A stretch of 64,000 nt of DNA from Orbicella franksi (GCA_964199315.1 OZ116698.1:7006001-7070000); one strand, 5' to 3'. Shown: positions 14,301-64,000, counted from the stretch's first letter. Notes: generated from the letters alone by a model not told the origin. Program-made: numbers and translations.

Positions 14301-14608
14301 CTCGGCGCCGAAGCAGCATTATCCAACGTGTCTTCTTTCGAAATATCACTCTTAAACCGAAGATCGTCGGTCAACTGTTCTAGAATTTTCCTCGCGACCT
14401 CCTCCTCTCGATCGATTTCCTTATCAGAAATTTGCCGACCGGCGGACCTTCGGATCGTAGCAATCTGTGTGATGTAAAACCACACGGTCACAATGAGCAG
14501 AAAAACAAACGCAAACGACCAGAATAAGATGGATATTTCTCCTTCTTCGGTTTCATCCTGACTCGGAATGTAGTCTTCCGCAGCCGAAGAAATCACCGCC
14601 ATCCACAT
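5333..14608 (-). CDS. AJM1: Apical junction component 1 (AJM1/AJM-1)-like protein, 3091 aa, single uninterrupted ORF
   Basis: The C-terminal ~290 aa (5333-6205) contain CSNPRC...CPACFTYYCTRNCRRIHWSEHKKVC (MYND-like zinc finger), then GRINS...KGRGCVLVTF...PPTYSSL...YDPEGEFVLNLAI and YGIRLKNDYPDVYEKLCLYVDQNIRF...MCKIM. I recognise this as the AJM1 (C9orf172) C-terminal architecture. There is a hydrophobic segment at aa ~26-50; the rest is acidic, Ser-rich and probably disordered. Confidence 0.85.
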   Translation of the reverse strand: MWMAVISSAAEDYIPSQDETEEGEISILFWSFAFVFLLIVTVWFYITQIATIRRSAGRQISDKEIDREEEVARKILEQLTDDLRFKSDISKEDTLDNAASAPSGEREESSVYEYIDDEIHIHYSKYGWDDESFESSDGSSGLAAARRPSMENMDLIFPGFLPSIVEEEEIEEDSDSESSEKSQDTDVDDKFSADLSYLPTAYKQLVNNNDGVLESSVNIEHKLDLSESGTKFAPFIESRETMTKELQPKEDRVVIGEPAESQSLFAFENVNHPAIVKSISEPVNIEQNGSSLLSTEIDNRCRVLDAENSKNILSPEPASHISTQQSAIPTKCRTVAEVTSGSLDFSAPKDEKETILDSVSDVNNSAIESTSLFTISSCDLAPALKQDANEEPKLHASNEQKISCPPNGLDRYFTRDIRFENSKNEENAHGNIENERDTELSDTSAEEDTSGLKGIKMDINKSDLADFQLKGFVDEIAGTNDHTRHAWTFFSMSGSDETTKPQKGISSPKQQLDQVAVPKIIIDSYDDGLKSDIKIANDDSMDMNGSTRYANSFETDTFETDIDIDDVDLIDSDELQDEGEFSIYFKRHVSVTDLDKILSEEGQAEVNDDSSKDVVETDLSVDKVEQRDVDISSTRTVISSDEETNYSITAPETTHVDDGSDINIQKSIIVTSKLSDCLDKQPSEELQEFEPSIKSYEVETLMDDVSFQKDGVYGELVLSKLNDHQRDYPDDVSFDYYGEDWSEFIEDYRRERKPRLYTIPEDEEISSAEDDKGEEFESNLWDQAGSNYSNGNEFSVRKDPRLQAPIATMDASDSEFDLDDHSSSEAEKSGPEIDEHSEKRYQPKLPEEPSHLDEIITYNGLTKNGGINEAKNLANEKEKKLKEPVFLDKIISCNGVTEKPEIGGVIDVASDEQKRSNEPPELSDKMFAYNGVNGDIGVVGDSTRSVKIVKKIKIFVRKEVMITKDEQELQSPKQLIEEFSDHKKDKIDTENARNETSARKEVEEAEIVPKCREPKMHPSYDVIKAEIDSDANFTQPMNFEEEQCDISEVIAKETEMIPKKESYTPPKPEQKVVDEVIEVSVKNTPERDVTQLLTQALAQSDNPKTDAKPESKIVTDVVKVLPLSLEGDAPKSVGIEDSCKPLTKNDNREMNNTSRAENVESCTSPTQKEAPVRDITQMSPKRTKQKHLSKMVARFESKIEAETFKARRSSVEFKVPKRDVTQDEEKLPVQNGQTKVDNKPGSEMKPENVKASVLSVGASVLKRDVRQDAQKLPVQSVQTKVDDKPGSEIKSENVKASVSPVGANVPKRDVRQDAQKLPVQSVQTKVDDKPGSEIKPENVKASVSSVEANVPKRDVRQDAQKLPVDSVQTKVDDKPGSQMKPENVKASVSYLEASVPKRDVTQDIEKLPVLSDQTEIDAKPESKSTPEANQLKTTPVKEHIPKLGVTQYVKKLGQTNRDAKPDSQSTPETIQMRKSFVEEDVPTPDVTQNLETIPVESDQTTIVAKPQSKSTPRTIEARSSSVEQDVSKRDVTQQLENIPVQSDQMTIESKSTPETIQANEVSLKEDIPKVVFTECVENLPAESDLTDADVKPESKSTPETVQANESSLKADTPKLVLKEYVENLPPKSDATNDDVKPELKSTPDTIQARTLPVKENIIKANVKEYVERLPAQSDQTQIDANPDSKSTPATIKTTASSVQEDVIKRDVTAYVERLPEQSDQTQIDAKPDSKPTSATIKTTVSSVKEDVIKRDVTAYVERLPAQSDQTQIDAKPDTTSTPAAIKTTASSVEAVAPKRGITNDVAQTPAQKDDILLEAKLEPKITPEIKARASSVEAVSSEREIVKDFVKVPAQNDQTKSDRTDKVSKTVTKDDIQAKPKRSNVGLKLFISGKRRKEDSKTASENGMLSPSSSEEPALTEETEVQSPESPPVTISIQGKDSQEDREGRRVRSPTRMSPTPWEKKPRKTYLASRNIRLSKSHEDLRFVERAPGEMQDIIQEEEPATHNVQAGQSVPEDDVKELIEPDSIHTAKITVQEVVGDKQRILILNVKKKVHGKARWKSLSDLDSIKMAVTPPRRRSDLGNALASFAEEEKKVEGRKGPTVLPVLEVKTRRKSLPEMEESISEEQVVSPRRSPILKVTALQDLESVTEKDAPTRIIKARVMPVLEEGEAQSDENVTEIRDKETSRREFKARVTQISSRESKPRVEREDVDGSEENRAQERIISAPIVSPVVEAIPWLERETVTEISDSATKGNTIKVRVARVTPAEEVPPQTEDRFSRPRLSPTVETLPKLRDEREIEARVSQISPIREVRYRQGRESGYGSLEIKDNDAGTPSAFNTLGSVRSDPVSTLGGVNERSVSSLSSIEDAFDGEILGESRIMVTDLDALLAQQTAAVTEEKPRPQSPETHEVTEKVHVWARMEPVPQKAVRINSNEQDDDENLVIHHVKSEEPIVIEPVIVTEAASNEESNVISAFLVNDGYDDDELDEVFLEDYPPYGFPNSHGNSVRKHSSDADSETSSVSSLPLKPRHRQTRAALEAANIGARNRTESSGSSKTATPVAELENEKAATSSGSSTPEIRAREVSREESFSYKTPERSPPAAKETLTKFTSAFISLSRTTNVRRPRARSEEKSAPKSDEESSAQTKGPGSSLQKKGLGTSVQDVQIMPGLHIDQQRFKDAADSRKSMPDLTKRQHPINDSPFLRGLSAHTRKWLSQNAWMDSNEQQDEDDLMTSDLFLYPSNRFQPGSNIDASFMSLAGERDFPDDISVSSLSTRPQSPMSEFSFAGEVPYWGMRRGSTTTVKCSNPRCEQEEVLFPGEKTTYTSCPACFTYYCTRNCRRIHWSEHKKVCFFGRINSYIRSFIYLCHKKEALKFQLSKAAKEGFKRKGRGCVLVTFASAQSARKFMTTGCSFFPSPPTYSSLQDLQAEGVVSKHRVALIQNIRDYDPEGEFVLNLAIIAGKMENLPANPVPRRKVTTVLQVIKIPLSSKLKEDVSSSPSDPKTETKLFYLPKCARHEFVNENEARRHYCRNISKNLKQYGIRLKNDYPDVYEKLCLYVDQNIRFKEPLTVYGNQGKKIVMCKIMPEAGDDGKK
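9040..10960 (-). repeat. Coding tandem repeat, ~14-15 units of 135 nt (45 aa), inside AJM1-like ORF
   Basis: Units such as KRDVRQDAQKLPVQSVQTKVDDKPGSEIKPENVKASVSSVEANVP and KRDVTAYVERLPAQSDQTQIDAKPD...; the DNA period of 135 is visible (cgttcgct at 10561 and 10696). Two units are shortened to 41 aa. Confidence 0.9.
11805..12070 (-). repeat. Three degenerate ~37-aa coding repeats (EPxxLDxIIxxNG) in AJM1-like ORF
   Basis: EEPSHLDEIITYNGLTK / KEPVFLDKIISCNGVTE / NEPPELSDKMFAYNGVNG. Confidence 0.65.
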
Positions 14609-45694: not shown

Positions 45695-48600
45695 ATGAAC
45701 AACATTGACCCAGGAGACGCTAGTGTCGATGTGCTGGCTCTGTTGCAAGAGCAACTCGAGGCTAGAAGCAAACCAACTGTTTTGATCGAGTCCACCGTTC
45801 TCCTAATCATCAATGTGGCCTCGCTGGTGGGGAATGCTATGCTGTGCTGTATCGTTTACCGCAATCACAGACTTCATAGTCCCACAACCATGCTAATTTT
45901 TGCGCTGGCCTTCACGGACCTGTTAACTGCGGTGACCGTGATGTCGCTAACAGTTGACGCTGCTATCTACAGCAAAAGGCGTTTCAGCGACGCCGTCTGT
46001 AAAGCGCACGCTTTCGCTACGGCCGTCCTGGCTCAGGTCTCCATTTTCATCATGGCTTTTACGGCTTTCAATCGTTACGTGTGTGTTAAGAAGCAAACCC
46101 TCTACAGGAAGATCTTCACTAAAAAGAAAACGCTCCTGCTGATCTCAGCTATCTGGGCCATAGCGCTGATCACCAACGGCATCCCCAATATCCTGTCCTT
46201 GGATGACTTCTTCTTCTGCCCGGGATATCTACTGTGCTGGAGGCGAATGATGGCTCCAGCCGCTATTGTCTCGTTCAACGCCTGGCTTTATGGCTCCTTC
46301 GTCCTCTCCTACGCAGTGATCGTGGTCTGCTACTGGAAGGTGTTCCGCACCGTGAAGCGACACAACGCAGCCGTTGCCCCGATTCTGAGCCAAACCAGTC
46401 GAGCTGGCAACTATTCTGAGGAAGCATCGGTGGCCAGGTCAGTAGCAGCCATCATCTTTGCATTCACCATCTGCTGGATCCTGTCAGAAGTGATGGACAC
46501 GATGGACAAGATTAATCCACTTCTTCTGCCTCGTCAGGTAAGCAGACAAGCATTTCTCCACTACCCCAAGGATTCGAACTTTCCATTTAACTTGTAACAA
46601 GCGTATTCGTTTGTTTAATTTAGTTTAAAGCTGCTTTTTCTAATTTTGGTAAGTAAGAAGCAAGTAACAAACTGTCCGGAAAAAAAAAAAAAAAAAAAAA
46701 AAAAAAACATAAAAAAAACTTTTCGTTGACAGGAGACCCCAAACAGTTAACTTTCGCGCTACATACTAACAAAGTTATTCAAAATGTGAAAAGAAAAATG
46801 CAGGACAGTGCATGCAGGAAGAAGAATATATGTTCAATACGTTTCCTTATCTTTATTATAATTCAATGCCAAGAAATCAGATACAGAAATATTAAAAAAA
46901 AAGCCACCAGGATAATTTATCAAGTTTTTTTGTGAAATTGAATATTTCAGGAACCCAGCTAATAGATAGGCAGCAAATATCACGAAGAAGAAAATAGAAG
47001 TTTGTTCCTATAAGGTTTTTTAACATTTCAGTGTTTCCTCGCTGCATGCGATAATGTTACTTTGATATCAATATTTCAATCTTTCCAGGAAGTATTCAAT
47101 AATTTCCAAACGTTTCCTGTAGTACAAGGACCGCGTTTTTGCACCTTTGTCGCGCTTTTCCAGTCCGTTTGTGGTGCTCTTTGCCCGCTTCATGCAAGAA
47201 TGGAAACTTACAATGAAATGGTGACAGTAGGACTGTTGTAGGGTTTCATTAATTAAACGTGCCTTAAATGTAAAATGTCGCATTTTTTTCGCATCGTATC
47301 CGACAGATGTAGGTAATTCGTGTCGCAGACTTGTCGTAAGATTGCAAATTGTTCAGTAGGCGACGAGATTGCATATTGTCTAAATCGCTTCGTCTTTAAT
47401 GAGAGCATCATTTTGTAAGGCACAGTTTTCCCCGACTGATGTATCTTGATTTTTGCCTGGCAAGTTTCGGTCCAATACATTATTTGTTAGGATGTGAATT
47501 TTTCCCAATATAAACGAAAAAGTTTTACAACCACAGGCATTTATGACAAAAATTAGTAAAAGCATAGTTTGGGAGGGTCAGCCCGGGGATACGATCAATC
47601 GTATAGACCGTGCATCTCCAGTGCTCGCGAAAGAAAAAAATATCCACTATGCCATCGAAAGAGATGTATTCCAAGAAGCCCTACACTCGGTATACATTAG
47701 CATTCATCTACGAGCGAAACACGTGTTTATTTGAACCTTTAACCTTGTGGAGGCGAAAAGCAAAGCAAAACGCAAAATGTTTCAATAGACGGATTGCATC
47801 GACTAAAAGAAGCACAGTTACGTTTGATGATGAAAGCATAAATCTTGATAGGAGATTTTCGACATGGTTTTGCGCGCGTGCTCTCAAGGGCGCATTAAAT
47901 CTCCACGTGTGGTTATATAATCATTTTACCCGGTCAGTGGTTAATTTATGTGACAGGGAATTTATCTGTGCTCATCTCATAGACAGCGATGTCTATACTT
48001 GAGATACGAGGAACAAAAGACCGCATCGTATTCGTTAACGAGTAACGACCATGAAGGTGGCGACCTATTGAGCCGCAAAGAACAAACTAAGCCACCAGGA
48101 TAATTACTTTTGAAATATCAAGTCGATTCCTTTTGCCTGTTTTAGTTCTTGTTTTTCAGTTTCAAAGCAATGACGGTAAACCTTTAATCAGAGCTGTCAT
48201 TTTGATGTAAACGCAAAGTGATTCATTTTCAAATTCAAAGCGTTACTTTGATGTTATAATTTCCAGTTTTTACAATAGATCAGTTCTGATGAATGAATGA
48301 ATGAATGAAAGACTTTATTTAAGTGTCACAAGTATTTAGCTTTAAAGAAAACTATAATGATAATGTAATGAAACGATCACTACTCAGTTAATAGTAGGTT
48401 CAAATCCCAATTATGTTAATTTTGACCAAGTCTTTTACATCCTTACACGATATTTAGTAAGAAAAGGGTATGACAATCAGGCTTTGTTGTGAGTGAAGTT
48501 TAGATGCAGATCTCACTGGAAGACCCCATAATCAAAAGCAACCCATGTGTTTCCAGTTTTTTCCCTTTTTTTTTCAACTTGAAAATTTGGCAGTGAAACA

Positions 48601-49420: not shown

Positions 49421-51852
49421 AATGTCAAGGAAAAAGTTCTAGGGCTTCTAGAGCCCCTTTAACTTCATAGTATAATCCCTGGGTTTTAGTAGCTTTAGGT
49501 GTGTAGGGAACCTATAAATGGAGGGAGGGGCTTATATCAAGAACACCTTGTATCCGGTATCAAACATTTATAAGGGAACCTATATTCAAGTGGGGATAAT
49601 AAATGACCGGAATAGTTTTTCTTTTGGGATACAGATGGGCCTACAAATCCTCGCTGGGTGGGAAGGGGGGGGGGGGGGAAGGAGGAGGGAGAGGGGTGGG
49701 TTGGTGGAGAGGTTTTAACCTCGGGGCCTTATAATTCATGATCAATAAAAGGACAGACGCATGAAAAACTGATGTCAATTTGTTAAGCGCACAGGAGGAT
49801 GAAGGGATATTGTATATCAATGTGGGTTTAATCGTTACGATGAACGATATCCCTTCTCTCACAGGCAGGGTGTGCACCGAATGTAGCCTGTAACCCAAAT
49901 AGTTTAAAATATCTATCTACAATAAAGAGTTTGGACTTCGATTCAATCTTTATCTCAAAAGGGAGACTTTTAACTTTCTCTTGGACAAAGTGATGAAAGT
50001 GCTGCAATTTGATGAAATGTTTAAAGATGTTTTGAGACTACTTATTATAACTTTGCAAACAAGTCTTACCCATGCTTATTGAGATGGTGTTGTGGTGATC
50101 ACGCCGCAGAAATGGTCAAGTTTAATTTTACAACAATCAAAATTGGGCACGATGGTTAGTTTCCTTATAGACGATTTTAAATATCAGCAAAAACTGCTTC
50201 TATAGGGTTAAATAGCACATAATCAAACACAAATAGCAAACTCTCACTGAGTGAAGTTCGAGTATTAGTTTATCATACTGGGCTAGCTATAGAAACAATG
50301 TCCCCTCTGATTATCGAAACTTCTCTTTGCTAACTTCCATATATAATATATCGCGGAATGACCCAAAATATGCAATTAAATTGCATAAAACGTTTTTAAA
50401 GAGCAAAACTTATCAACCATTAAGTTGATAACTTGAAATTTTTTTAAGAACGCAGGTTTTTAGTTGAAGAATGAATATCAGGAGCACAGGGCATCGATGA
50501 AGTTTGTTTAGTGAAAGTATGTCAAAATATTACCATTCTGGTGTCAATTTTTAACTCGTTATTTTTTCTGTGCACTAGATGTTTTACTGATTGCTTTACT
50601 CGTATATTTGTCTTTGTATCATCTGCAAAATAGTAACTGAGTTTATAGCAAGCTACTGGTGTTGCTTAATAAAAAAAACTATATATCAGTCCGGATTCTG
50701 TTCCTTCTAGCCAAAAACAGACCATATTTTCCTCTAATTTTCGTAAAGGAACATGCATAATTAGCAGATAATTTCAGATCGTGTGCAAGTATTCTCAATG
50801 GCTACACTCCTTCGATGATACACTTTTACATACAACTCAGCACTACACAAAAAAATGTCTTTGTTCATCAATTACATGTAGCAATCGCGAACTTCGAATT
50901 CGTTGATCCATGAAAACAGGTGCTTCACACAAATTATGTTTGCTCTTAACAAGAAGACGATTGAACAACAAACCGTGGTTTAGTCCTGGTATTCGATTTC
51001 ATTAATATTCAACGCGGACAGATGTTATGGTGGTATTCTCAACAATGAGACACCCTTGTGACAAAATATACAACTCTGCGATACACGCCTAGCACTGTTT
51101 TTCAATTAAATGTGACCGCCTTGAATTTCAATGTTGCCGAGAAATGCCCAACACAAGAAAGTATTTGTGATTGACAAGAAGATGATTGAACAACAAGCCC
51201 TAATTTATCAAACATTGACGCCAGTTAAGCTTGGTCAAAGTTTGAATCATAATCCTAATCTTAAGTCTTAATTTCTCGCTGTTACCATTTTTTTTTTTTA
51301 TTTAACTCTTATTAACTGGGTAGGAAGTCTGTATGGGAGAATTTTGACCGAGGTCGCGAGTACAGACCGAACGCAGTGAGGTCTGTACACACAACCGAGG
51401 TAATTTCAGATAGTTGATGGTAGTCTCACCATACACACCTGCGATACACTTTACAACTCGGCAATACACAAAAATGATGTTTTTGTTCATCAATTAAATG
51501 CAACAATCATGAACTTCGTTGCTGCTGTTAGGTGTTTCAGACAAATTATGTTTGCGCATGACGAAAAGACCATTGAACAATTTAGTCATAGTATTTGATT
51601 TCATTCTACTCGGTCAGATGTTACGGTGATATTCTCACCAAGGAAACATCTGTGACAAATTTTACAACTCGGTGCTACCCGCTTTGGTTTATTAATTAAA
51701 AGTGACGATGAATTTCAGAGTTGCCGAGAAATGCACAACACAGAAGTCTATTTCTGGTTGGCAAGATGATTGAACAAGGACTCGTAATTTATGAGTAGCA
51801 TATGGTTGTCACTAAATCATTAACTGTTTTATAATAACACTAAATCAGGCAA

Positions 51853-51943
51853 TATAAATAACTCGTCAGTTCAGCTTGTATTCAGTTGCAATTACTTCAG
51901 TGATCGAAGAAGTACTCTCTGCTGTTCACTAAACGCCAATAAG
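51853..51943 (+). promoter_or_regulatory. TATA box + Initiator + non-coding first exon, peptide gene copy 1
   Basis: TATAAATA 51853-51860; Inr TCAGTT with A at 51884 (31 nt downstream); the exon ends AAG|gtaaga at 51943. Confidence 0.75.
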
Positions 51944-52113
51944 GTAAGAAGAAAATTGAGGATCGCGTCATTTCTGTTCATTTTTTAATATGCTCAAAAA
52001 CATTCCTGTGTCCCATGAGTAAAACTTTCTCACTTAGAAACGAAAGTAATAACTGTTGACGGGTAAACAACAAATGTAATTATTATTATTTTCTTTTTAC
52101 ACAGTTTATCAAG

Positions 52114-53141
52114 ATGAACAAGTTTTGGATCGCAATTCTCTTGATGTTTGTTATTACATCTCTGTTGATCGATGACAGGTAATTTTCATAGCATCACGTA
52201 AACTGTAGATTCTCTCAGTTTTCTTCCTGAACCTTGGGTAATACTTTTCTTTTTAAAAAGAACTTCTTTAAACTCCGGATAAAAATCTGTAGAATGTCTT
52301 GGATAGAATGTACTGACAAAAATGAACTAATTTATAATTGGTCAAGAACGCAAGGACTTACTCCTTCTGTAGTTGCAAGTCAGGCCCACCTTAAAGATCA
52401 GCAAGTGCTAGATGTGGAACAATTAACGTCCTTGCTTAATGAACCATTTTAAAAAAAAGTATTAAGACTCAGTGGAAGGTCAAGCGCTATTCAGGATACC
52501 ACTGATTTCAAGAGGGATAAGATTAAAACGTTCGAGGTGACTTCGTCGTCTAATTTCAGACTAGAAAGGATAAAGGAGGACTTTACATTGTATGGTTTCT
52601 TTCTTTCAGGGGTAGTTTTAAGGGTTTCAATTTATCTTACCTTCGATTTTAAAATATTTCATTTTCTAACAAATGATTAAAAATAAACTGAAGGATTTTT
52701 ATTTATGAATTCGGAAGGAGTTTCTTTTCGTGTCGAATTTTGGATTTGTACTGTCTCCGTCTGTTTGTTTGGCAACCTGTGCTATTTTTTGTTACGATAG
52801 TTTCTATAGAGCTGTTTATGCGAAACCTTTTGAATCTGCTCCAGAAGCATATCACCTAGATCAAGGTGATAAGCTTATGATCTGCTCTTAACGCTTCTTA
52901 TCCGGCCAAATCTTAGATTTGCTGTAATCTATAGTTGTTGCTTTTATTTTTCAGTGACGCTTGGCGAAGACGGCGTCGACGGCGTCGTAATGGTAAGATG
53001 GACGAAAACGAGATGCCAGTCTCCGCAGATGTTAGCCAGGAGGAGATTCCAGAAAATGCTAAACAAAGCATCATTGACGCTCTTACTGATCAGGAAGATG
53101 AAGCAGAGGAATACGACATTCATCCAAAACACGCCATTTAA
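52114..53141 (+). CDS. Secreted poly-arginine peptide precursor, copy 1 (83 aa)
   Basis: Coding exons 52114-52178 and 52955-53141 (phase 2, AG|gtaatt...tttcag|T) give MNKFWIAILLMFVITSLLIDDSDA-WRRRRRRRRN-GK-MDENEMPVSADVSQEEIPENAKQSIIDALTDQEDEAEEYDIHPKHAI*. Kozak aagATG; AATAAA at 53268. Confidence 0.88.
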
Positions 53142-53689
53142 AAGAACTGCAGGACAATTTACACAAAGAATTGAAAATATCACGCACATCAAAACTTGAT
53201 CAAGCTTCCTTTATTTTAACTACCTTAATTTCAATTTTTGTTTGCAAATTGTTAGCATATATTTTGAAATAAATGGTTGATAAAGTGTTTTAATTGTTTG
53301 TTTTTGTTGTTTCTGTTTTCAATTCATCAAAACTTTAATAACAACAGTCGAAGTTACAACCCTCCCTTACAGGGCTAGTTGTTATGACACAATATGCAGT
53401 AAGAACTTACACCACTACATGAATACTATAACGAGGCCTTTCAAGATTTGGAAACCACTTAAAACTATCTTGAAAACACAGGCCTCGAGAGAAAAAAGTT
53501 TTTTATCGCCTATTTCCGACGGAAGTGGAAAGAAAATTTAAGAGCTGTGTCTTTGAGCTTCTTGTGTTGAAATTATATGACGAGCTGGTTGAAAAGTGGC
53601 GGTAAAATGTGTAGCGAAATAACAAAACTAGCCGTTTAAAGTTGGGTTTTACATTGAACTTTTTTTGTGTGCGATTTTTCAGGTGTCTC

Positions 53690-53810
53690 ACCGCTAGTTG
53701 GATTTGTTCTTGGTAGTCCCGAGTTCAACTCCTCGATCACGTTGTGTAAACTGAGCCAACTGGTCAACCTCACATCAGTTGGGATTCTTAATAGTTTAGG
53801 TTCTGTTTGA
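53690..53810 (+). mobile_element. 5'-truncated SINE (family A) downstream of copy 1; matching copy at ~59130-59240 in unit 2
   Basis: ctagttggatttgttcttggtagtcccgagttcaactcctcg...agccaactggtc...cagttgggattcttaa matches the body of 33751-33945 and 27391-27623. Confidence 0.65.
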
Positions 53811-54180
53811 AATATTCGTTTATTCATTTACAATGTCCCCAATTACCACAACAGTGCTAAATACATTTGATGCTTCAATAAAGTTATTGGTTTATTTTAT
53901 CTTATTTTTATTTAGCGTGTGGTTTGTTTTTGAAGTGGTCTGGTTGGTTACGGTATTATATTCTCGATGTTTGTGTGAATGATTTAGTTAGAACGAATAT
54001 ACACTGCACTATCGTTGTACCTGAGCGGTTTTCTGTTTCAATAAAAGTGTGCCTGTACATTACCTTGTAAGGTTTTGTTTGAGTCCATTTGTCGATCGAG
54101 GAAGAGAATTTTCAGTGGTGAGTCAAGGCAATACTATCACCGAGAAAGTCGTCAAGGAGAGGATTGTTTTCATGAGGTAA

Positions 54181-54612
54181 ACTGGAGACGACTTTCTCGG
54201 TGATTTCAAGGACGAGTTGGGAGAAGACGACTTCATCACTGAATTTGCGTCCGCGGGACCGAAAAATTATGGTTACCTCACGAAGAAAGAAAAAGAAGAA
54301 TGCAAAGTGAGGGGAATCTCTTTAAACAGTGAAGGTAGCAAGCAGTTAAATTATCAAGTGTTGCGGCAAAATGTTTTAGACGAAATTCAACGCCCTCTCG
54401 AGAAAACGCGACAAACTGATATTTACAAGCCTTATCACATCGTCCGAAACTCCAAAGAGTACTCACTGACCACAGTCTCTCAGACGAAAAAGTACCAGCT
54501 TGTGTACGAAAAACGAGTGATAGATCCCTACACCTTCAAAACATATCCCTATGGCTATGAAAGAATAACAAATGAGGACGTGGACATGATTGAACTGTTG
54601 TGCCATTTGTAA
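54181..54612 (+). pseudogene. C-terminal fragment of a Polinton/Maverick (adintovirus-type) protein-primed family B DNA polymerase
   Basis: Frame reads TGDDFLGDFKDELGEDDFITEFASAGPKNYGY...CKVRGISLN...LNYQVL...KKYQLVYEKRVI...TYPYGY. The EF.S.GPKNY.Y, KVRG..LN and YPYGY motifs are typical of Polinton polB C-termini. 5'-truncated, no start. Confidence 0.85.
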
Positions 54613-54939
54613 ACGCTTTTGTAAATAGTTTCATTCATAAGTTGAGCGCAATCCACTAGGGAGTTGCACACGGCTCTGACCTGTAATTTTAGGGAAACAT
54701 TTGATATTAAAGTTAATGGTTAACTTTAAAATTGCGTGATTACTTTGTTTATGTTACAAACCAGGCTTTTTACTCGGTCAACACGGAAACGAGATTAATG
54801 ACGTCAAAGGGGCGGGGCTTCTGGTTACCATGGATACGTCAAACTCGAGAAAACAATAGAACTCCTTTCCATAACAATACTTTTTCATTTGCATCACAAT
54901 ACCTGTCAAATCCGTACTGGACTAGCCCATACCACTACT
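54181..54939 (+). mobile_element. Right-hand end of a Polinton/Maverick (polB 3' end + probable TIR ending ACTACT)
   Basis: After the polB stop come ~330 bp of non-coding DNA ending ...ccataccACTACT at 54939, directly abutting host sequence cccagtctttt that also occurs at 60125. ACTACT is the complement of the AGTAGT Polinton terminus. Confidence 0.65.
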
Positions 54940-56161
54940 CCCAGTCTTTTGGTTCAAATCACCTACACACTGGAGAGTGAGGGGATATTGATTGTTCACC
55001 AACGTCGGTTTAATTGTTGCGGTGAACAATATCCCTTCTCCCATGCCACCGGGTGTACAAGTAATTTGGCCTGTAACCAAAATACTTTAAAATATCTTGC
55101 TATAATAAAGTGTTCGGACTTCGATCTAACATTTTTTTCAACAGTGAGACTTAAAATCTTCCGCCCTCAGACAAAATAATAAAAGTGCTGCATTTTAATG
55201 AAATGTTTGGAGATATTTCGAGACTGCTTATTATAACTTTGCAAACAAGTCTTACCCATTCTTAACATACGAGTTTACTAAAAATAACTCTTGGTTTGCG
55301 TAATGAGTCATTCACCAGTAGCGTAATATTTTAGTTATTAAAGATGGTGTTGTGGTAATCACGCCATGCAAATGGACAATTAAGAAAAAAAAAAAAACCA
55401 CAATTGTACAGGATGGTTAGTTTCATTGTTGATGGCGATTTTAAACGCCAACAAGAACTACCTCTAAAATAGCAGGTTAACTGGCATGCATAATCAAACA
55501 AAAAGAGCAAACTCTCGCAGAGCGAAGTTCAAGTATTAGTTTACCACACTGGGTTAGTTATAGAAACAGTGTCCCCCTCCCCTGACAATCGAAATTTCTC
55601 TTTCCCAACTTCTGTAATATATCGCCAAATGTCACAAATTATGCTATTAAATTGAAGAAAACGTTTTTACAGAGCAAAACAGAACAACCATTTTCTTGAA
55701 GAATGAAGAACCGTAGTGCAGGGACTGAAGTGATTTGTCAATGAGATTTGTTTAGTGAAAGTACGTCAAGAAATTACTGGTGTCAATTTTAAGGTCATTA
55801 GTTTTCTTCCGTCTTACTCGATATTTTACTGATTGCTTTACTCGTGTATTTTTTTTTTTTCGTATTGTTTGCAAATTAATCAAGCTTATAGGAAGCTGGT
55901 GCTCTTAAAACATTAAAAACACGATATATCATCCAGGAATCTGTTCCTTGTACTGAACAAATAACAGGCAACTGATTTTCCTCTATTTTTCGTAAAGGAA
56001 CATCTACCTTTAGCAGATAATTTCAGACAGTGCACAAGTACTCTCACTGGCGACGCTTCTACGATACGCTTAACAACTCGGTAACTACACAAAAATGTTT
56101 TTGTTTATCAATCACATGTACAAATCACGAACTTTCTGCGACAAGACAGGTGCTTCACGCG

Positions 56162-56364
56162 AATAGAACTTTTTAGTTCGGGCGTTTTGTTGTCCCATTT
56201 CCGACCATGAGATGATGCTCTTGAGAAATCTCGCTTTACAATTTTCAAATTGTCCCGTGGATATAAATGAAGCATTCTGTTTTAGATGGATAAAAGAACA
56301 ATTCCCTAGAGAATATAACGTGGTCTGAAATGGGAAAACAACCGCCCAAGCTAAAAAGTCTATT
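56162..56364. mobile_element. MITE unique to array unit 2 (upstream region)
   Basis: ~45-bp imperfect TIRs aatagaactttttagttcgggcgttttgttgtcccatttccgacca / tggtctgaaatgggaaaacaaccgcccaagctaaaaagtctatt; absent at the homologous site in unit 1 (~50930). Confidence 0.75.
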
Positions 56365-57100
56365 ATGTTTGCGTTTAGAACGACAAGACTATGAAACAAC
56401 AAACTTTTGTTTAGCCCAAGCATTCGATTCCATTGTACTCAAACAGATGTTATGGTGGTATTCACGCCAACGAGGCACCAGTGTCAAATTTTACAACTCA
56501 GGGCTACACGCTTTGATTTATCAATTAAAAGTGACTATCTTGAATTTCAATGTAGCCAAGAAATTCACAGCACAAGAGAGTATTTGTGCTTGACAAGAAC
56601 ATGACTGAAATATACGTCTTTGTTTGATAATTTCAGATGGGTAATGGTAGTCTCAGAAGAGACACACCTGCGATACGCTTTACAACTCGGCACTACACAA
56701 GAAAGATGTTTATGTTCATCAATTAAATGCAACAATCACGAACTTCGTTGCTGCCGTCAGGTGTTTCACGCAAATTATGTTTCCCCTCGACGAAAAGGCC
56801 ATTCAACAACAAGCCATATTTAGTCTAAGTATACGATTCCATTTTACTAGGTCAGATGTTATGGTGGTATTCTCACCAACGAGGCACTTGTGACAAATCA
56901 TGTTACAACTCGGTACTACACGCTTTGATTTATCAATTAAAAGTGACCATCTTGAATTTCAAAGTTGCCGAGAAATGAACAACACAGAAGACACTTTCCC
57001 TTCAGCAAGAAGATGTTTGAACAAGGACTCATAATTTACCAGTAGCAGATAGCTGTCACCAAATCATTAACCGTTATATAACAACACTAAACTCAGGCAT

Positions 57101-57191
57101 TATAAATAACTCGTCAGCTCAGCTTGTACACAGTTGAAATTACTTCAGTGATCGAAGAAGTACTCTCTGCTGTTCACTAAACGCCAAGAAG
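57101..57191 (+). promoter_or_regulatory. TATA box + Initiator + non-coding first exon, peptide gene copy 2
   Basis: TATAAATA 57101-57108; Inr variant ACAGTT with A at 57132 (31 nt); donor AAG|gtaaga at 57191. Confidence 0.72.
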
Positions 57192-57357
57192 GTAAGAAGA
57201 AAATTGAGTATCAAGTGATTCCGTTTTTCTTAATCTCCTCAAACATTCCTGTGTCTCATGAGTAAAACTTTCTCACTTTAGAAATGAAGGTAATAACTGT
57301 TGGCGGGTAAACATCAAAATGTAATTGTTATTTTATTTTTATACAGAGTTTATCAAG

Positions 57358-58583
57358 ATGAGCAAGTTTTGGATCGCAATTCTCTTGATGTTTGTTGTTG
57401 CATCTCTGTTGATCGATGACAGGTAATTTTCATAGCATCGCTTAAACGGTAGATTCTCACAGTTTTCTTCCTAAACCTTGGGTTAAACGTTTCTCTTTAA
57501 AAGAATTTCTACCTTAAACTCCAGATAAGGATTTGTAGAATGTGCTGTATAGCATGCACTGACAATAATGAACTAATAAGTAATCGGTCAGGAACGCAAG
57601 GACTTACTTTCGTAGTTCAACCCACGTCCTTACTTAATGAACCATTTTAATAACGTATTAAGACTCACTTGAAGGTCAAGCGCAGTCCGGGCTACCACTG
57701 AAAAGGGAAAGGGATAAGATTAGAAAGGGTCGTGGTGATTTCAGACTAGAAAGGATAAAGGAGGACTTTACATTGTATGGTTTTTCTCTTTCAGGGGTAG
57801 TTTTAAGGGTTTCAATTAATCTTACATTCGATTTTAAAATATGTCATTTTCTAACAAATGGTTAGAAAAAAACTGAAGCTCTTGTTATTTATAATTTCTG
57901 AAGGAGTTTCTTTTCGTGTCGAGTTTTGGATATGAACTGTCTCTCTCTCTGTTTGGCAACCTGTGCTTTTTTTTGCTACGATAGTTTCTATAGAGGGTGG
58001 TAAAGGGGGGGGGGGGGGGTATAGATCACGTTTCACGGAAAATAAAGCAGCCCTTTCACAATTCACGAAAAATACAACATTGGCAGTTTACGCTTCACGG
58101 AAAAGAAAAGAGAACGTTTTGGAAAATCACGGCTCACGGCAACTATGGATATCACGATTCACGAGGAAAAAAAATGGCATTTCACATTTCACAGGAAATA
58201 AAATGGGCCGATCACGGGTCACGAAAGTACCCTTTACCGACCCTCTCTATAAAGCTGTTTATGCGAAACCTTTTGAATCTGTTCCAGAAGCATATCACCT
58301 AGATCAAGGTGATAAGGTTATGATCTGCTCTTGATGCTTCTTAACCGGCCAAATCTTAGATTTGTTGTAATCAATAGTTGTTCCTTTTATTTTCAGTGAC
58401 GCTTGGCGAAGACGGCGTCGACGTCGTCGTAATGGTAAGATGGACGAAAACGAGATGCCAGTCTCCGCAGATGTTAGCCAGGAGGAGATTCCAGAAAATG
58501 CTAAACAAAGCACTATTGACGCTCTTACTGATCAGGAAGATGAAGCAGAGGAATACGACATTCATCCAAAACACGCCATTTAA
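57358..58583 (+). CDS. Secreted poly-arginine peptide precursor, copy 2 (83 aa)
   Basis: Coding exons 57358-57422 and 58397-58583 give MSKFWIAILLMFVVASLLIDDSDA-WRRRRRRRRN-GK-MDENEMPVSADVSQEEIPENAKQSTIDALTDQEDEAEEYDIHPKHAI*. AATAAA at 58710. Not shown in the ORF track. Confidence 0.88.
57993..58245. mobile_element. 253-bp MITE in intron 2 of peptide copy 2
   Basis: TCTATA|gagggtggtaaaggg ... ccctttaccgaccctc|TCTATA; the empty site tttctatagagctg is present in copies 1 and 3; about 13 internal TCAC(G) repeats. Confidence 0.85.
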
Positions 58584-61285
58584 AAGAACTGCAGGACAAT
58601 TTACACAAAGAACTGAAAATATCACGCACATCAAAACTTGATCAAGCTTCGTTTATTTTAACTACCTTAATTTCAATTTTTGTCTGCAAATTGTTAGCAT
58701 ATGTTTTGAAATAAATGGTTGATAAAGTGTTAATTGTTTGTTTCTGTTGTTTCTGTTTTCAATTCATCAGAAATTTAATAACAACAGTCGAAGTTACAAC
58801 CCTCCCTCACAGGGCTAGTTGATATGACACGATATGCAGTAAGAACTTACACCACTATATGAATACTATAACGAGGCCTTTCAAGATTTGGAAGCTACTT
58901 AAAACTATCTTGAAAACACAGGCCTCGAGAAAAAAAGTTTTTTATCGCCTATTTCCGACGGAAGTGGAAAGAAAATTTAAGAGCTGTGTCTTTGAGCTTC
59001 TTGTGTTGAAATTATATGACGAGCTGGTTGAAAAGTGGCGGTAAAATGTGTAGTGGAATAACAAAACTAGCCGTTTAAAGTTGGGTTTTACATTGAATTT
59101 TTTTGTGTGCGATTTTTCAGGTGTCTTACCGCTAGCTGGATTTGTTCTTGGTAGTTCCGAGTTCAACTCCTCGATCGGGTTGTGTAAACTGAGCCAACTG
59201 GTCAACTTCCCACTAGTTGGGATTCTTAATAGTTTAGGTTCTGTTTGAAATATTTGTTTATTCTTTTACAGTGTCCCCAATTACCACAACAGTGCTAACT
59301 ACATTTGACATTTATATAAAGTTATTGGTTTATTTTATTTTATTTACCTTGCGGTAATAATCTGGTTTTCGGAAGAGGTTTGGTTTGTCATAATATTATA
59401 TTTTCGATGTTTGTGTAAATGATTTAGTTAAAACGAATACCCACTGCATTATCGTTGTATCTGAGATGTTGTCTGTTTCAATAAAAGTGTAGCTGTACAT
59501 TATCTTGTAAGGTTTTTTTTTTGAGTCCATTTGTCGAGGTAGAGAATGAGTCCTGAGTCACTGAGGCAATGCTATCCTGGTTTGAAAAATTCTCATTAAC
59601 ATGGTTTACTGCCATGAACAGATAACCGTTAATCCGCAAGTCATAATTATCAAGTTGAATCAATAGACAGCGCAATTAATGTAAACTTAAATGATAACGT
59701 AAATACCTCCAACTGTTAAAGTCTAGAATACAATACGTGTCGTTGATTGATGTGCTTTCCCTTTATATAGTATTTTACCATGTCTTACCTGGGATAAAAT
59801 AATCTGAAAATTGGGCTTACGAATTAAGGTTGTAGTTGTGATTACTGTTAGGGTTAGGATTTTTGCTGAACTTGGAAACTCGGATCATGGAGCATCAAAG
59901 GAACTGAAGAATCTTTGCCCAGAGTGGATTCTCCGAGCGATCTTGGATTAATTTGTTTAGTAAAGAAACGCAAAATCCGTTTTTGCATTTTAGAATCCAA
60001 TCTTGGATTTTCTTAGAGAAACGCATCCTTTGAGTTGGGGTTATGTAAGGATACCGCTGGTGTACGAGCTTATTATCGTTGACTGTACGTTACGTTCAAC
60101 GCTTTTTTGAAAATGGCTTGGTCACCCAGTCTTTTTGTTCAAATCACCTACACACGGGAGGGTGATGGGATATTGATTGTTCACTCAGGTAGGTTTAATT
60201 GTTACGATGAACAATATCCCTTCACCCATGCCACCTGGTGTATGCATAATTTGGCCTGTAACATGGTAACCCAAATACTTTAAAATATCTGGCTATGATA
60301 AATTGTTCGGACTTCGATTTCATCTTTTTTTCTTTTTCAGAAGGAGACTTTAAACTTTCTCTCGGACAAAACTTATGATAAAAGTGCTGCATTTTAATGA
60401 AATGTTTGAAGATATTTCGAGACTACTTATTACAACTTTGCAAACAAATCTTGCCCATTCTTAACATACGAGTTTACTAAAAATAACTCTTGGTTTGCGC
60501 AATCAGTCATTCACCAGTAGCGTGACATTTTGGTTGTTAAAGATGGTGTTGTGGTAATCACGCCATACAAATGGACAATTAAAGAAACAACCACAATTGG
60601 ACATCATGGTTAGTTTCATTATTGGTGGCGATTTTAAACGTCGAAAAAAAACTACCACTAAAATAGCAGGTTAACTTGCATGCATAATAAAAAAAAAAAA
60701 AAAATTAGCAAACTCTAGCAGAGCGAAGTTCGATTATTAGTTTACCATACTGGGTTAGTTATAGAAACAGTGTTCCCCCTGACAATCGAAGCTTCTCATT
60801 CCCAACTTCTGTAATATATTGCCAAATGTCACAAATTGTGCTATTAAATTGGATAAAAAGTTTTTACATAAGTGCAGGGACGGAAGTGATCTGTCAGTGA
60901 GATTTGTTTAGTGAAAGTACGTCAAAATATTGTCATTCTGGTGTAAATTCATTTCACGCAAATCATGTTTCCCCTTGACGAAAAGGCCATTCAACAACAA
61001 GCCATATTTGGTCTAAGTATACGATTCCATTCTACTAGGTCAGATGTTATGGTGGTATTCTCACCAACGAGGCACCTGTGACAAATTTTACAACTCGGTA
61101 CTACACGCTTTGATTTATCAATTAAAAGTGACTATCTTGTATTTCAAAGTTGTTGAGAAATGCACAACACAGAAGAAGCTTTCTGGTCGGCAAGAAGATG
61201 ATTGAACAAAGACTCATAATTTACCAGTAGCAGATGGTTGTCACCAAATCATTAATCGTTATATAACAACACTAAACTCAGGCAA

Positions 61286-61376
61286 TATAAATAACTCGTC
61301 AGCCCAGCTTGAACTCAGTTGAAATTACTTCAGTGATCGAAGAAGTACTCTCTGCTGTTCACTAAACGCCAAAAAG
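61286..61376 (+). promoter_or_regulatory. TATA box + Initiator + non-coding first exon, peptide gene copy 3
   Basis: TATAAATA 61286-61293; Inr TCAGTT with A at 61317 (31 nt); donor AAG|gtaaga at 61376. Confidence 0.75.
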
Positions 61377-61543
61377 GTAAGACGAAAATTGAGTATCAAG
61401 TCCTTTCTGTTTTTTGCTTATTCTGCTCAAACATTCCTGTGTCCCATGAATAAAACGTTCTCACCTTAGAACTGAAGGTAATAACTGTCGACGGATAAAC
61501 ATCAAATGTAATTGTTATTTTATTTTATACAGAGTTTATCAAG

Positions 61544-62524
61544 ATGAACAAGTTTTGGATCGCAATTCTTTTGATGTTTGTTGTTGCATCTCTGTTGATC
61601 GATGACAGGTAATTTTCATAGCATCACGTAAACTGTAGATTCGCTCAGTTTCCTTCCTAAACCTTGGGTTATACGTTTCTTTTTAAAAAGAATTTCTTCC
61701 TTAAACTCCAGATGAGGATTTGTAGAATGTGCTGTATAGCATGCACTGACAATAATGACCTAAAAGGTAATTGGTCAGGAACGCAAGGACTTACTCCTTT
61801 TGTAGTTCAGCCTGCGTCCTTACTTAATGAACCATTTTAATAACGTATTAAGACTCACTTGAAGGTCAAGCGCAGTCCGGGCTACCATTAAAAAGGGAAA
61901 GAGAAAAGATAAAAAAGGGTCGTGGTGATTTCAGACTAGAAAGGACAAAGAAGGACTTTACATCGTATGCTTTCTTTCTTTCAGGGGTAATTTGAAGGGT
62001 TTCAATTAATCTTACATTCGATTTTAAAATATTATATTTTCTAACAAATGGTTAGAAATAAACTGAAGGTTTTTTTTTTATTTATAATTTCTGAAAGAGT
62101 TTCTTTTCGTGTCGAATTTTGGATGTGTATATACTGTCTCTGTCTGTTTGTTTGGCAACCTGAGCTATTTTTTGCTACGATAGTTTCTATAGAGCTGTTT
62201 ATGCGAAACCTTTTGAATCTGCTCCAGAAGCATATCACCTAGATCAAGGTGATAAGCTTATGATCTGCTCTTAACGCTTCTTAACCGGCCAAATCTAGGA
62301 TTTGCTGTAATCTATAGTTGTTGCTTTTATTTTTCAGTGACGCTTGGCGAAGACGGCGTCGACGTCGTCGTAGGGGTAAGATGGACGAAAACGAGATGCC
62401 AGTCTCCGCAGATGTTAGCCAGGAGGAGATTCCAGAAAATGCTAAACAAAGCATCATTGACGCTCTTACTGATCAGGAAGATGAAGCAGAGGAATACGAC
62501 ATTCATCCAAAACACGCCATTTAA
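61544..62524 (+). CDS. Secreted poly-arginine peptide precursor, copy 3 (83 aa, W-R9)
   Basis: Coding exons 61544-61608 and 62338-62524 give MNKFWIAILLMFVVASLLIDDSDA-WRRRRRRRRR-GK-MDENEMPVSADVSQEEIPENAKQSIIDALTDQEDEAEEYDIHPKHAI*. AATAAA at 62651. Confidence 0.88.
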
Positions 62525-64000
62525 AAGAACTGCAGGACATTTTACACAAAGAACTGAAAATATCACGCACATCAAAACTTGACCAAGCTTCGTATATTTG
62601 CACTACCTTAATTTCAATTTTAGTTAGCAAATTGTTAACATATATCTTGAAATAAATGGTCGATAAACGGTTTTTTGTTTGTTTCTGTTTTTTCTGTTTT
62701 CAATTCATCAGAAATTTTCATAACAACTGTCGAAGTTATAACCCTCCCTTATAGGGCTACTCGTTATGGCACAATATGTAGTAATAACTTACACCACTAT
62801 ATGAATAATATAACGAGGTATTTCAAGATTTGGAAAAAACTTAAAACGATCTGGATAAGACTGGGCCTCGAGAAAAACCCAAAGTCTTTTTTATCGCCTA
62901 TTTCCGACGAAAGTGGAAATAAAATTTAAGAGCTGGGTTTTTGAGCTTTTTGTGTTGAAATTTAATGACGAGCTGGTTGAAAAGTGGCGGTAAAATGTGT
63001 AGGGAGATGACAAAATTAGCCGTTAAATTTGGGATTTACATTGATTGTTTTGTTCAATTTTTCAAGTGTGTTATTTCAGCCAAACTGAAAGATTTAGTTT
63101 GAGTGAGGTTTGTCGTGACGTCATGATTACCCAAAAAGCGAGGATAGATGTGAGTGTTTTTTACTGAATCAAGTCGCTTCTTTTAATTCTACGCACGATT
63201 TCGTGTTAAAACGTTGCCACATCACACTTTGAGGTGGTCTTTCCATTGACATGGATTGTTTTATGATGAAGGAAAAATTAAAAATTTCAAACGAGTGTTA
63301 CATACATGATACATATTCTGTTCACGACCCATAGGTCCACAGGTCTACAGGCTTACACCTCCTGCTACATACATGATAGCCATTCTGTCTACATCCCACA
63401 ATTAATTTGCTTTGTTAAGGATGAGCCTTGCTGACCATTGCATTATTGATGTTATCCATACTCACAAATAAAATCTGCATTCCGTTCTTTTATTCCTGTT
63501 GACGACATCGCTCGGCGTAAGTTAATTTAATGAAAAACTTTCTTTTTAATGTTCCGTAAATACAAAGTACCATCAAAAAAGAAGAACCGCCTCGCACCTT
63601 ATCATAGAATTGTAAACCTCTCGGACTTAGTAGACTGCTCCCAGTCTGTTTTTCTCTCGAAATTCAGCAGGGATTATACCGCCCTTTTGCGTTCGCGATA
63701 AATAAACACTGGTCTAAGTGACCCTTAGAGAACACGGCCTCCAGCAGTCTAATTTATGACCCTCAGTCTGTGTAGTTTAGACTGAACATACCACTTCCCT
63801 CTCCTCTGCGAGATTTACCAATAACAAAATGTTGCTTTTTATGAAGCAAGTTCGAACTCGACTCAAGTTCGAGTCCTTTAGTGTTGTTACAAAACAGTTA
63901 ATGATTTGGTGACAGCCATCTGCTGCACGAAATTACGAGTTGTTGTTCAATCTTCCTCTTGGTAACCAGAAATAGTCGTCTGTATTGTGCGTTTCTTGGC

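Follow-up and report, generated by a model that had tools for sequence, protein, structure and literature searches.

The window analysed here, a 64,000-nucleotide (nt) stretch of the genome of the coral Orbicella franksi (GCA_964199315.1, OZ116698.1:7006001-7070000; G000:C1:7,006,001-7,070,000 within a 497-Mb assembly), contains three tandemly repeated units, each of which, judged from its sequence, is a small three-exon gene for a predicted secreted prepropeptide. The putative product consists of a signal-like leader, a tryptophan followed by eight or nine arginines, a Gly-Lys pair and an acidic C-terminal tail. By this predicted layout it would belong to a known type of precursor, in which a secreted cationic peptide is paired with an anionic pro-piece. 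Homology searches place it in an undescribed, cysteine-free, tandem-amplified poly-Arg precursor family which appears to be much older and wider than a coral novelty, with relatives conserved in other stony corals, in a brachiopod and in ocean metatranscriptomes. The exon model and the status of the units as genes rest on four lines of sequence evidence: islands of exon conservation, selection, a recurrent leader exon and a conserved promoter.

Between the window copies, the three predicted exons, including the non-coding exon 1, are 96-98% identical and free of insertions and deletions (indels). Identity drops to 85-92%, with many indels, in the promoter, in both introns and in the downstream flank, apart from the downstream flanks of copies 1 and 2, which are 97% identical. 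Exon 1 of copy 1, for instance, matches those of copies 2 and 3 at 96.7% identity without indels, while the corresponding values are 85-88% for intron 1 and 89%, with many indels, for intron 2. Non-synonymous and synonymous divergence (dN, dS and their ratio, omega) was compared using an intact paralogue elsewhere in the genome (L004, 77% DNA identity in exon B) and three copies from Oculina. Of the five comparisons with the paralogue and Oculina, four showed a dN of 0 in the W-R8-x-G-K block, at a dS of 0.24-0.53; dN was 0.08 in two pairings of the N form with the R form at the variable position x. Omega was 0.27-0.64 for the tail and 0.31-0.58 for the whole gene. The arginine run is encoded by a mixture of CGA, AGA, CGG and CGT codons, and synonymous changes leave the arginines in place, which implies that constraint acts on the protein; for this genome, the same two features rule out the run as a slippage microsatellite. 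In Oculina the run is encoded as (CGT)6, and slippage may therefore explain the length variants of 7-11. Purifying selection appears to be strongest on the stretch SDA-W-R8-x-G-K. The contention of an earlier note on this DNA that these are real genes is thus borne out by the dN/dS values together with the exon islands.

The promoter is conserved as well. A block located upstream of the TATA box is common to the window copies, the paralogue L004 and the three Oculina copies; in copy 1 it consists of an E-box-like CATATG, TGTCAC and AAATCATTAA. The order of elements shared with Oculina is the block AGCAGATGGCTGTCACCAAATCATTAAC, then TATAAATA.CTCGTCAG, then the initiator (Inr). A 17-mer of the TATA region, TATAAATAACTCGTCAG, is identical in the three window copies, and the TATA core TATAAATA.CTCGTCAG is kept in L004 and in Oculina, which has T at position 9. 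The E-box next to the ATTA core reads CATATG in copy 1, is lost (CAGATA) in copy 2 and is intact (CAGATG) in copy 3; the window copies may therefore differ in regulation, assuming the regulatory role that the conservation of the block suggests. A separate 62-nt element beginning TGAATTTCA.AGTTGCCGAGAAATG occurs upstream of the units at 51122, 51709, 56541, 56953 and 61138, that is, twice before copy 1, twice before copy 2 and once before copy 3, and may be a duplicated enhancer or the remnant of a repeat.

The features of the three units are as follows, with coordinates for copies 1, 2 and 3 in that order:
51797-51823, 57044-57070 and 61229-61255, + strand: promoter block, about 30 nt 5' of the TATA box in copy 1.
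51853-51859, 57101-57107 and 61286-61292, + strand: TATA box TATAAAT, by sequence reading.
51884, 57132 and 61317, + strand: the A of the Inr, (T)CAGTT, 31 nt 3' of the TATA box.
51884-51943, 57132-57191 and 61317-61376, + strand: non-coding exon 1, 60 nt, with the start predicted from the Inr.
52105-52178, 57349-57422 and 61535-61608, + strand: exon 2, comprising 9 nt of 5' untranslated region (UTR) and a 65-nt signal-coding part.
52114, 57358 and 61544, + strand: ATG in exon 2.
52179-52954 (776 nt), 57423-58396 (974 nt) and 61609-62337 (729 nt), + strand: intron 2, GT..AG.
52955-53141, 58397-58583 and 62338-62524, + strand: coding part of exon 3, stop included.
53142-53273, 58584-58715 and 62525-62656, + strand: 3' UTR, including AATAAA.
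53268-53273, 58710-58715 and 62651-62656, + strand: AATAAA.

The 3' ends of exon 1 (51943, 57191 and 61376) directly precede GTAAG, the coding part of exon 2 ends (52178, 57422 and 61608) at a phase-2 donor AG/GTAATTTT (AG/GTAATT in copy 1), and exon 3 is preceded by TTTTCAG in all copies. The stop of copy 1 is a TAA at 53139-53141, and those of copies 2 and 3 end at 58583 and 62524. The units form three direct repeats between 51.8 and 62.7 kb, with a start-to-start spacing of 5.2-5.4 kb and then 3.9-4.2 kb. The earlier note had described three units, each with a TATA box, Inr, non-coding exon, 65-nt signal exon, phase-2 intron, terminal exon and AATAAA, as amplified by tandem duplication; all of these elements were located, to the base, and the direct repeats bear out the mode of amplification. 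The possibility that the exons are merely the 5' end of a larger gene was ruled out: the stop, a 127-nt UTR and the AATAAA are kept in all copies, and the Oculina models terminate at the same stop. The greater length of intron 2 in copy 2 (974 nt) is due to an extra insert of about 370 nt at about 57963-58334. RNA libraries cover this insert at high depth, with reads running on into unrelated sequence, and it is a dispersed repeat expressed from elsewhere.

The joined frames are open in all three copies and each encodes a predicted protein of 83 amino acids (aa), with W-R8-N-G-K in copies 1 and 2 and W-R9-G-K in copy 3. The 24-residue N-terminal leader contains a 16-residue hydrophobic core (the predicted h-region) followed by DDSDA as c-region, with a conserved S at -3 and A or G at -1; the flanking charge is about +5 after the core and +2 before it. 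The 47-aa tail contains 15 Asp and Glu residues. Computed net charges are about -13 for the tail, about +8 for the W-Arg peptide and about -4 for the whole pro-form. None of the window copies has a cysteine after the signal. The precursor outlined earlier (a signal ending in SDA, W-R8-N or W-R9, G-K and a 47-aa acidic tail, free of cysteine) can therefore be read intact in all three frames, with its signal-like N-terminus, poly-Arg block and acidic C-terminal piece. The peptide itself is a tryptophan plus a homopolymeric R8 without a hydrophobic face, and the tail carries a helix A-K-x-x-I-I/L-x-A-L/F-x-D and, in corals, also a C-terminal Y-D-x-H-P-K-H-A (family alignments A1 and A2). An AlphaFold model built on alignment A2 had a mean predicted local distance difference test score (pLDDT) of 64 and only two helices, one continuous over residues 3-33 (low confidence) and the other at residues 54-67 (low to moderate confidence), and thus offered no fold worth searching.

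Five loci of the family were found in the genome, in which profile matches reach an E value of 1e-34: the three window copies; L004 (G000:C1:7238862-7239053, + strand), the intact paralogue about 170 kb downstream, with W-R9-GK, a diverged tail and a 470-nt intron; and L015 (G000:C1:7236357-7236464, - strand), a degenerate piece resembling exon B, which contains a TAG and lies on the opposite strand at a distance of 2.4 kb from L004. The family of three genes proposed earlier thus holds for the window, and the genome adds one intact paralogue and one degenerate copy. A word-indexed protein search with the exon-3 translation returned 42 proteins, an exhaustive profile search 35 representatives and a second profile 67. 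Nearly all database matches are exon-3-only open reading frames (ORFs) from coral metagenomes that start in the pyrimidine tract of the intron (for example, LLFLFF-SDAW...), as expected from the earlier remark that ORF finders miss the tiny leader exon. Among billions of predicted proteins, full-length models were found only in Oculina patagonica and Lingula anatina. The best annotated matches are four "hypothetical proteins" of O. patagonica of 84-85 aa (P0015, P0023, P0024 and P0028; models ACROYT_G003745, 44, 34 and 21), each a complete spliced model built to the same plan; three of these copies lie within 10 kb, one of them inverted (locus L005). A 65-nt leader exon (M-N-K-F/L-...-I-D-D, ending AG/GT) was located 158-776 nt 5' of exon B in every independent locus opened, namely L004, the three Oculina copies of L005, and L016, L017 and L018 from metagenome or Logan contigs; the intron between leader exon and exon B is 158-666 nt in the relatives.

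The family is not private to corals. The brachiopod L. anatina encodes an uncharacterized protein (XP_013381668.1, LOC106152583) that was matched at E 9e-5 by a profile containing no Lingula sequence. It reads leader-ADSDA/W-R8-NGK, with the leader and W-R8-NGK joined across an intron, and continues in an acidic tail that shares the I-I-D-x-L-x-D helix. In its locus (L010; LFEI02000130.1, 262525-276421), two or more leader exons, near 5852 and 11852, and two or more poly-Arg exons, near 2182 (W-W-R7-G-A) and 6139 (W-R8-NGK), form a tandem array. Another intron interrupts the Lingula tail, and the RefSeq model includes an additional in-frame exon upstream, probably 5' UTR. The intron next to the peptide lies in phase 2 in a Ser codon in corals and in phase 1 in an Ala codon in Lingula, 5 nt apart. 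A homologue search seeded with the Lingula protein returned only that protein itself. Three ORFs from the Tara Oceans metatranscriptomes (MERC; P0063, P0099 and P0101) carry a leader and HDSEG/W-R8-SGKMDES in one continuous frame, which shows the two parts joined in the mature mRNA of some marine relative; P0063 was also found independently by profile (E 4.6e-6). The earlier claim of an undescribed family stands insofar as no Pfam family and no paper were found, although gene models labelled hypothetical or uncharacterized exist in Oculina and Lingula. As to range, other stony corals do carry the family, which extends beyond them to L. anatina and the ocean metatranscriptomes. No Pfam family was matched at E <= 1 apart from noise, the ESM Atlas yielded no meaningful match, and exact-sequence look-ups of P0001 and P0063 returned no record. 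In the literature searched there was no natural W-poly-Arg peptide, no mention of the Lingula locus and no poly-Arg precursor from a coral or other cnidarian.

Constraint on the peptide was counted over 62 family members with a recognisable core. The arginine run has a length of 8 in 40 of them, 9 in eight and 10 in six, and the triplet before the tryptophan is SDA in 51 and SEG in three; small residues at -3 and -1 (S-x-A or S-x-G) occur in 55/62. Both alignments show Gly as an invariant column after the run; this Gly is followed by K in 50 members and by L in 10, the latter sharing the form G-L-Q-M-D-D or G-L-M-D-E-N. Between phyla, the hydrophobic leader keeps its length but not its sequence. 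Decayed relatives also exist, among them the frameshifted, Pro-rich P0014 and P0018. A W-R4-NNGK lineage (P0039-P0042; Tara Pacific scaffold L006, 250-870) is present in many samples. It was rejected as a functional short variant because in its leader exon the ATG is replaced by AGA and 2 nt are deleted, and it is probably a fixed pseudogene.

The window stretch is present in public runs labelled "coral metagenome" and in those of four coded organisms, and RNA reads were aligned to positions 57000-62700. The small polyA metatranscriptome X3 yielded one 2.3-kb contig at a depth of 31 that is unspliced and colinear with the genomic unit; it starts upstream of the Inr, in the TATA region, and extends across both exons and the intervening intron until about 700 nt beyond the AATAAA. 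At its TATA-region end (57096-57118) the contig carries the remnant of an Illumina adapter. It is too deep for DNA carry-over, yet unspliced. In the random-primed library X1, exon 2, the intron and exon 3 are likewise covered without splicing, with a depth of 5-6 in the intron and 16 on the exon-3 piece; contigs of both X1 and X3 cross intron 2 of copy 3 in this way. Word shares for the whole unit and for exon 3 are 0.24 and 0.25 in X1, which therefore looks unspliced. Exon 3 is enriched in three other runs, X7 (0.18 vs 0.39), X5 (0.20 vs 0.36) and X25 (whole unit not listed; exon 3, 0.69), and this suggests mature mRNA. The units are thus transcribed in some samples, with strong differences between samples.

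Our preferred reading, which we hold tentatively and at somewhat less than even confidence, is that the genes encode a secreted and probably amidated polycationic effector that is masked by its own acidic pro-piece. The 24-residue signal would be removed after SDA, and the acidic tail would mask the polycation during transit through the secretory pathway, since the proprotein is nearly charge-balanced (R8 and K against about -13 in the tail). Cleavage at G-K, followed by the action of a carboxypeptidase and an amidating enzyme, would release a decapeptide, W-R8-N or W-R9, with a C-terminal amide. Outside the cell the free peptide would bind membranes and polyanions, most likely in host defence, as an antimicrobial or at the surface or in mucus. 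Tandem copies would supply dose, and the promoter block, with its E-box and homeobox-like elements, could restrict expression to particular secretory cells or conditions. A processed prepropeptide is indicated because the best-conserved stretch lies exactly between a signal-peptidase site with small residues at -3 and -1 and the Gly-Lys. A host-defence effector is favoured because of tandem amplification in three lineages, birth-and-death pseudogenes and sample-specific expression. The arrays of the window coral, Oculina and Lingula are independent, and degenerate or frameshifted copies are represented by the fifth genome locus, by P0014 and P0018, and by L006, which has no ATG. Trp/Arg peptides are well-known membrane-active antimicrobials, and anionic pro-pieces occur in the precursors of antimicrobial peptides (AMPs). 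Activatable cell-penetrating peptides (CPPs) work on the same principle: a polyanion, joined by a cleavable linker, masks the polycation (PMC8341016).

Several observations weigh against this secreted, masked effector. It presupposes signal cleavage, amidation and survival of the R8 run amid convertases that cleave at dibasic sites. The ten G-L members and the G-A of the Lingula paralogue indicate that the amidation route is not universal. The near-invariance of the peptide from coral to brachiopod is unlike typical antimicrobial peptides, which evolve fast, and leaves room for signalling or inhibitor roles. Seawater ionic strength weakens electrostatic killing, and the charge-difference rule would leave the R8 flank in the cytosol. 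Moreover, no GT..AG splice joint was seen in the RNA reads over 57000-62700, where the X1 and X3 contigs are colinear with the genome; two deep polyA runs from 2026 labelled organism A (X19 and X21) had about 0 reads on any exon; and a first scan of JGI metagenome contigs for the spliced-junction patterns gave no match. A second such scan gave three matches, all by chance, in unrelated repeat-rich sequence. The missing splice joint does not count as a negative, given that exon 3 alone has larger word shares than the whole unit in X25, X7 and X5. The spliced transcripts that the earlier note had asked for were accordingly not seen as junctions in the reads of this species, and the check is answered by proxy, through the Oculina and Lingula models and the MERC mRNAs.

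A bolder version of the effector, possible but doubtful in our estimation, is that the family represents an ancient, genome-encoded and self-masked octa-arginine (polycation, cleavable Gly-Lys, polyanion) that is unmasked after secretion, whereupon the W-R8 amide would enter or coat target cells or block furin-type proteases. Candidate targets would then be microbes, symbionts, prey or the animal's own cells, and the family would be a conserved activatable polycation, not an ordinary lineage-specific antimicrobial peptide. A different and rather unlikely explanation is a hormone- or neuropeptide-like signal, with W-R8-X-amide acting on a conserved receptor or channel. The layout agrees with that of GnRH, AKH, corazonin or vasopressin, with a single peptide straight after the signal, a Gly plus basic residue and an acidic associated peptide; across phyla, conservation is highest in the putative peptide and the other parts of the precursor diverge, the Gly is invariant with K next to it in 50/62 members, and the CAGATG E-box with the ATTA core would be of a kind used in neural and secretory cell types. 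A rhodopsin-type G protein-coupled receptor (GPCR) gene lies 5.5 kb upstream, an adjacency that is probably a coincidence. Neuropeptide genes, however, are rarely tandem-amplified with birth-and-death pseudogenes in several lineages, the eight arginines amount to stacked dibasic sites that the convertases and carboxypeptidase of the regulated pathway would be expected to destroy, and no such peptide turned up in the literature searched. It is unlikely, too, that the product is a type III (N-out, C-in) single-pass membrane micro-protein, in which the leader would remain as an uncleaved anchor, W-R8 would be the positive-inside stop-transfer flank on the cytosolic side, and the acidic tail would be an interaction module in the cytosol that includes the helix and the C-terminal YD.HPKHA. 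A hydrophobic core of 16 residues is long for a signal h-region, the flanking charge (about +5 after and +2 before the core) favours a cytosolic C-terminus under the charge-difference rule, and the low-confidence AlphaFold model draws a single helix over residues 3-33; among corals the hydrophobic segment is better conserved than the tail, and the C-terminal motif is highly conserved. Such an anchor nevertheless leaves unexplained the canonical signal-peptidase site before W (S-x-A/S-x-G in 55/62) as well as the invariant Gly and frequent Lys after the run. Furthermore, four or five polar or acidic residues (DDSDA) separate the core from the arginines, unlike a positive-inside flank, and across phyla the segment retains length and not sequence, as signal peptides do.

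The published activity of oligo-arginines raises the idea of an endogenous regulator of proprotein convertases or of granule packing, which we consider improbable: the run could act as an inhibitory segment (cf. proSAAS and 7B2) or condense with polyanions. Polyarginines inhibit furin and other convertases with nanomolar Ki, and longer ones are more potent, up to nine residues (PMC4482483). In the family the run stays at 8 from one phylum to another, the small acidic protein is predicted to pass through the secretory pathway, and a conserved intracellular target would account for the invariance. Against this, the published inhibitors are synthetic and mostly D-peptides, there is no similarity to proSAAS or 7B2 (no Pfam match), and neither tandem amplification nor sample-specific expression would be expected of a housekeeping regulator. 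The RNA evidence could also mean that transcription of the units does not lead to productive splicing or translation here, the copies looking conserved but being non-functional or decaying, given that only unspliced colinear RNA-library contigs were seen, that two deep polyA runs lack reads, that copies 1 and 2 have a changed E-box and that pseudogenised relatives exist. This would be surprising, and we rate it as very improbable: the three frames, the splice sites, the TATA boxes and the AATAAA are all intact, conservation is exon-specific and free of indels, dN/dS is below 1 with a peptide dN of 0, and the exon-3-enriched polyA shares (X25, 0.69; X7, 0.39 vs 0.18) fit mature mRNA.

Comparison with known systems shows which parts of the putative design are familiar. 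The tunicate clavanins and styelins and the fish piscidins and pleurocidins have the same order of signal, cationic peptide, Gly as amidation donor and acidic C-terminal extension, and are likewise cysteine-free with their charge neutralised in the pro-form. Their mature peptides are fast-evolving, amphipathic, His/Phe-rich alpha-helices of 22-25 residues, whereas the window peptide is a tryptophan and an eight-Arg homopolymer that is invariant across phyla, and no sequence similarity or Pfam match links the two. The likeness to a piscidin/clavanin-type layout drawn in the earlier note thus holds for order and charges, but does not extend to an amphipathic mature helix or to sequence. Hydra arminin and NDA-1 are secreted precursors in which an anionic region accompanies a strongly cationic peptide, and NDA-1 blurs the line between neuropeptide and AMP. 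In these precursors the anionic part comes first and the heteropolymeric cationic part is C-terminal, the reverse of the order in the window products, and protein, profile and Pfam searches revealed no homology to either. NDA-1 has been placed among Cys-rich peptides, and the known coral AMPs damicornin, AmAMP1 and digitiferin are all cysteine-rich and of the ShK type, with signal peptides that are highly conserved among corals (PMC12496222). Like the predicted window products, the coral AMPs are small, are secreted by stony corals and have a signal peptide. The window products, however, lack cysteine after the signal and have the acidic piece after, not before, the cationic part, so the proposed distinction from the coral AMPs is upheld.

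In composition, the window peptide is almost identical to synthetic R8, R9 and W-tagged R8, and activatable CPPs have the same order of polycation, cleavable linker and polyanion (PMC8341016). Oligo-Arg CPPs are man-made, whereas the design described here is genome-encoded, predicted to be secreted and evolutionarily conserved. Precursors of GnRH, AKH and corazonin likewise extend the peptide from the signal-peptidase site to a Gly plus basic residue, with the acidic piece after it and the peptide best conserved; the window genes differ in the monobasic G-K in place of G-K-R, in the internal eight-Arg run and in their tandem amplification. Very long arginine runs are shared with protamines and other sperm nuclear basic proteins, but these nuclear proteins lack a signal peptide, an acidic pro-piece and a Gly-Lys, while the window genes start with a hydrophobic leader.

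If made as predicted, these products would constitute the first natural secreted oligo-arginine peptide family in the literature searched. Peptides of the R8-R9 kind are in standard use for drug delivery and inhibit furin potently, and are treated as synthetic in the literature found. That corals and a brachiopod alike keep the run at eight suggests a specific, conserved target. For coral biology, the family would add a cysteine-free candidate effector or signal to only three characterised AMPs, and its conserved promoter might serve as a marker of a secretory cell type. The fact that almost all database entries other than those of O. patagonica and L. anatina are exon-3 fragments illustrates how entire peptide families escape gene callers when the leader exon is tiny.

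Three other ORFs in the window were noted. The upstream GPCR gene is an intact 300-aa ORF of the rhodopsin family at 45695-46597 on the + strand (Pfam 7tm_1, E 5.6e-32). A 131-aa ORF (54217-54612, + strand) with no Pfam match lies in the spacer that separates copies 1 and 2 but not in that before copy 3; by eye it may resemble the C-terminal end of a B-family DNA polymerase of a Polinton/Maverick-type element. An uninterrupted ORF of 3091 aa, unusually long and intronless for an animal genome, occupies 5333-14608 on the - strand; its sole Pfam match is a C-terminal MYND zinc finger with an E value of 6e-5, at Pfam's threshold.

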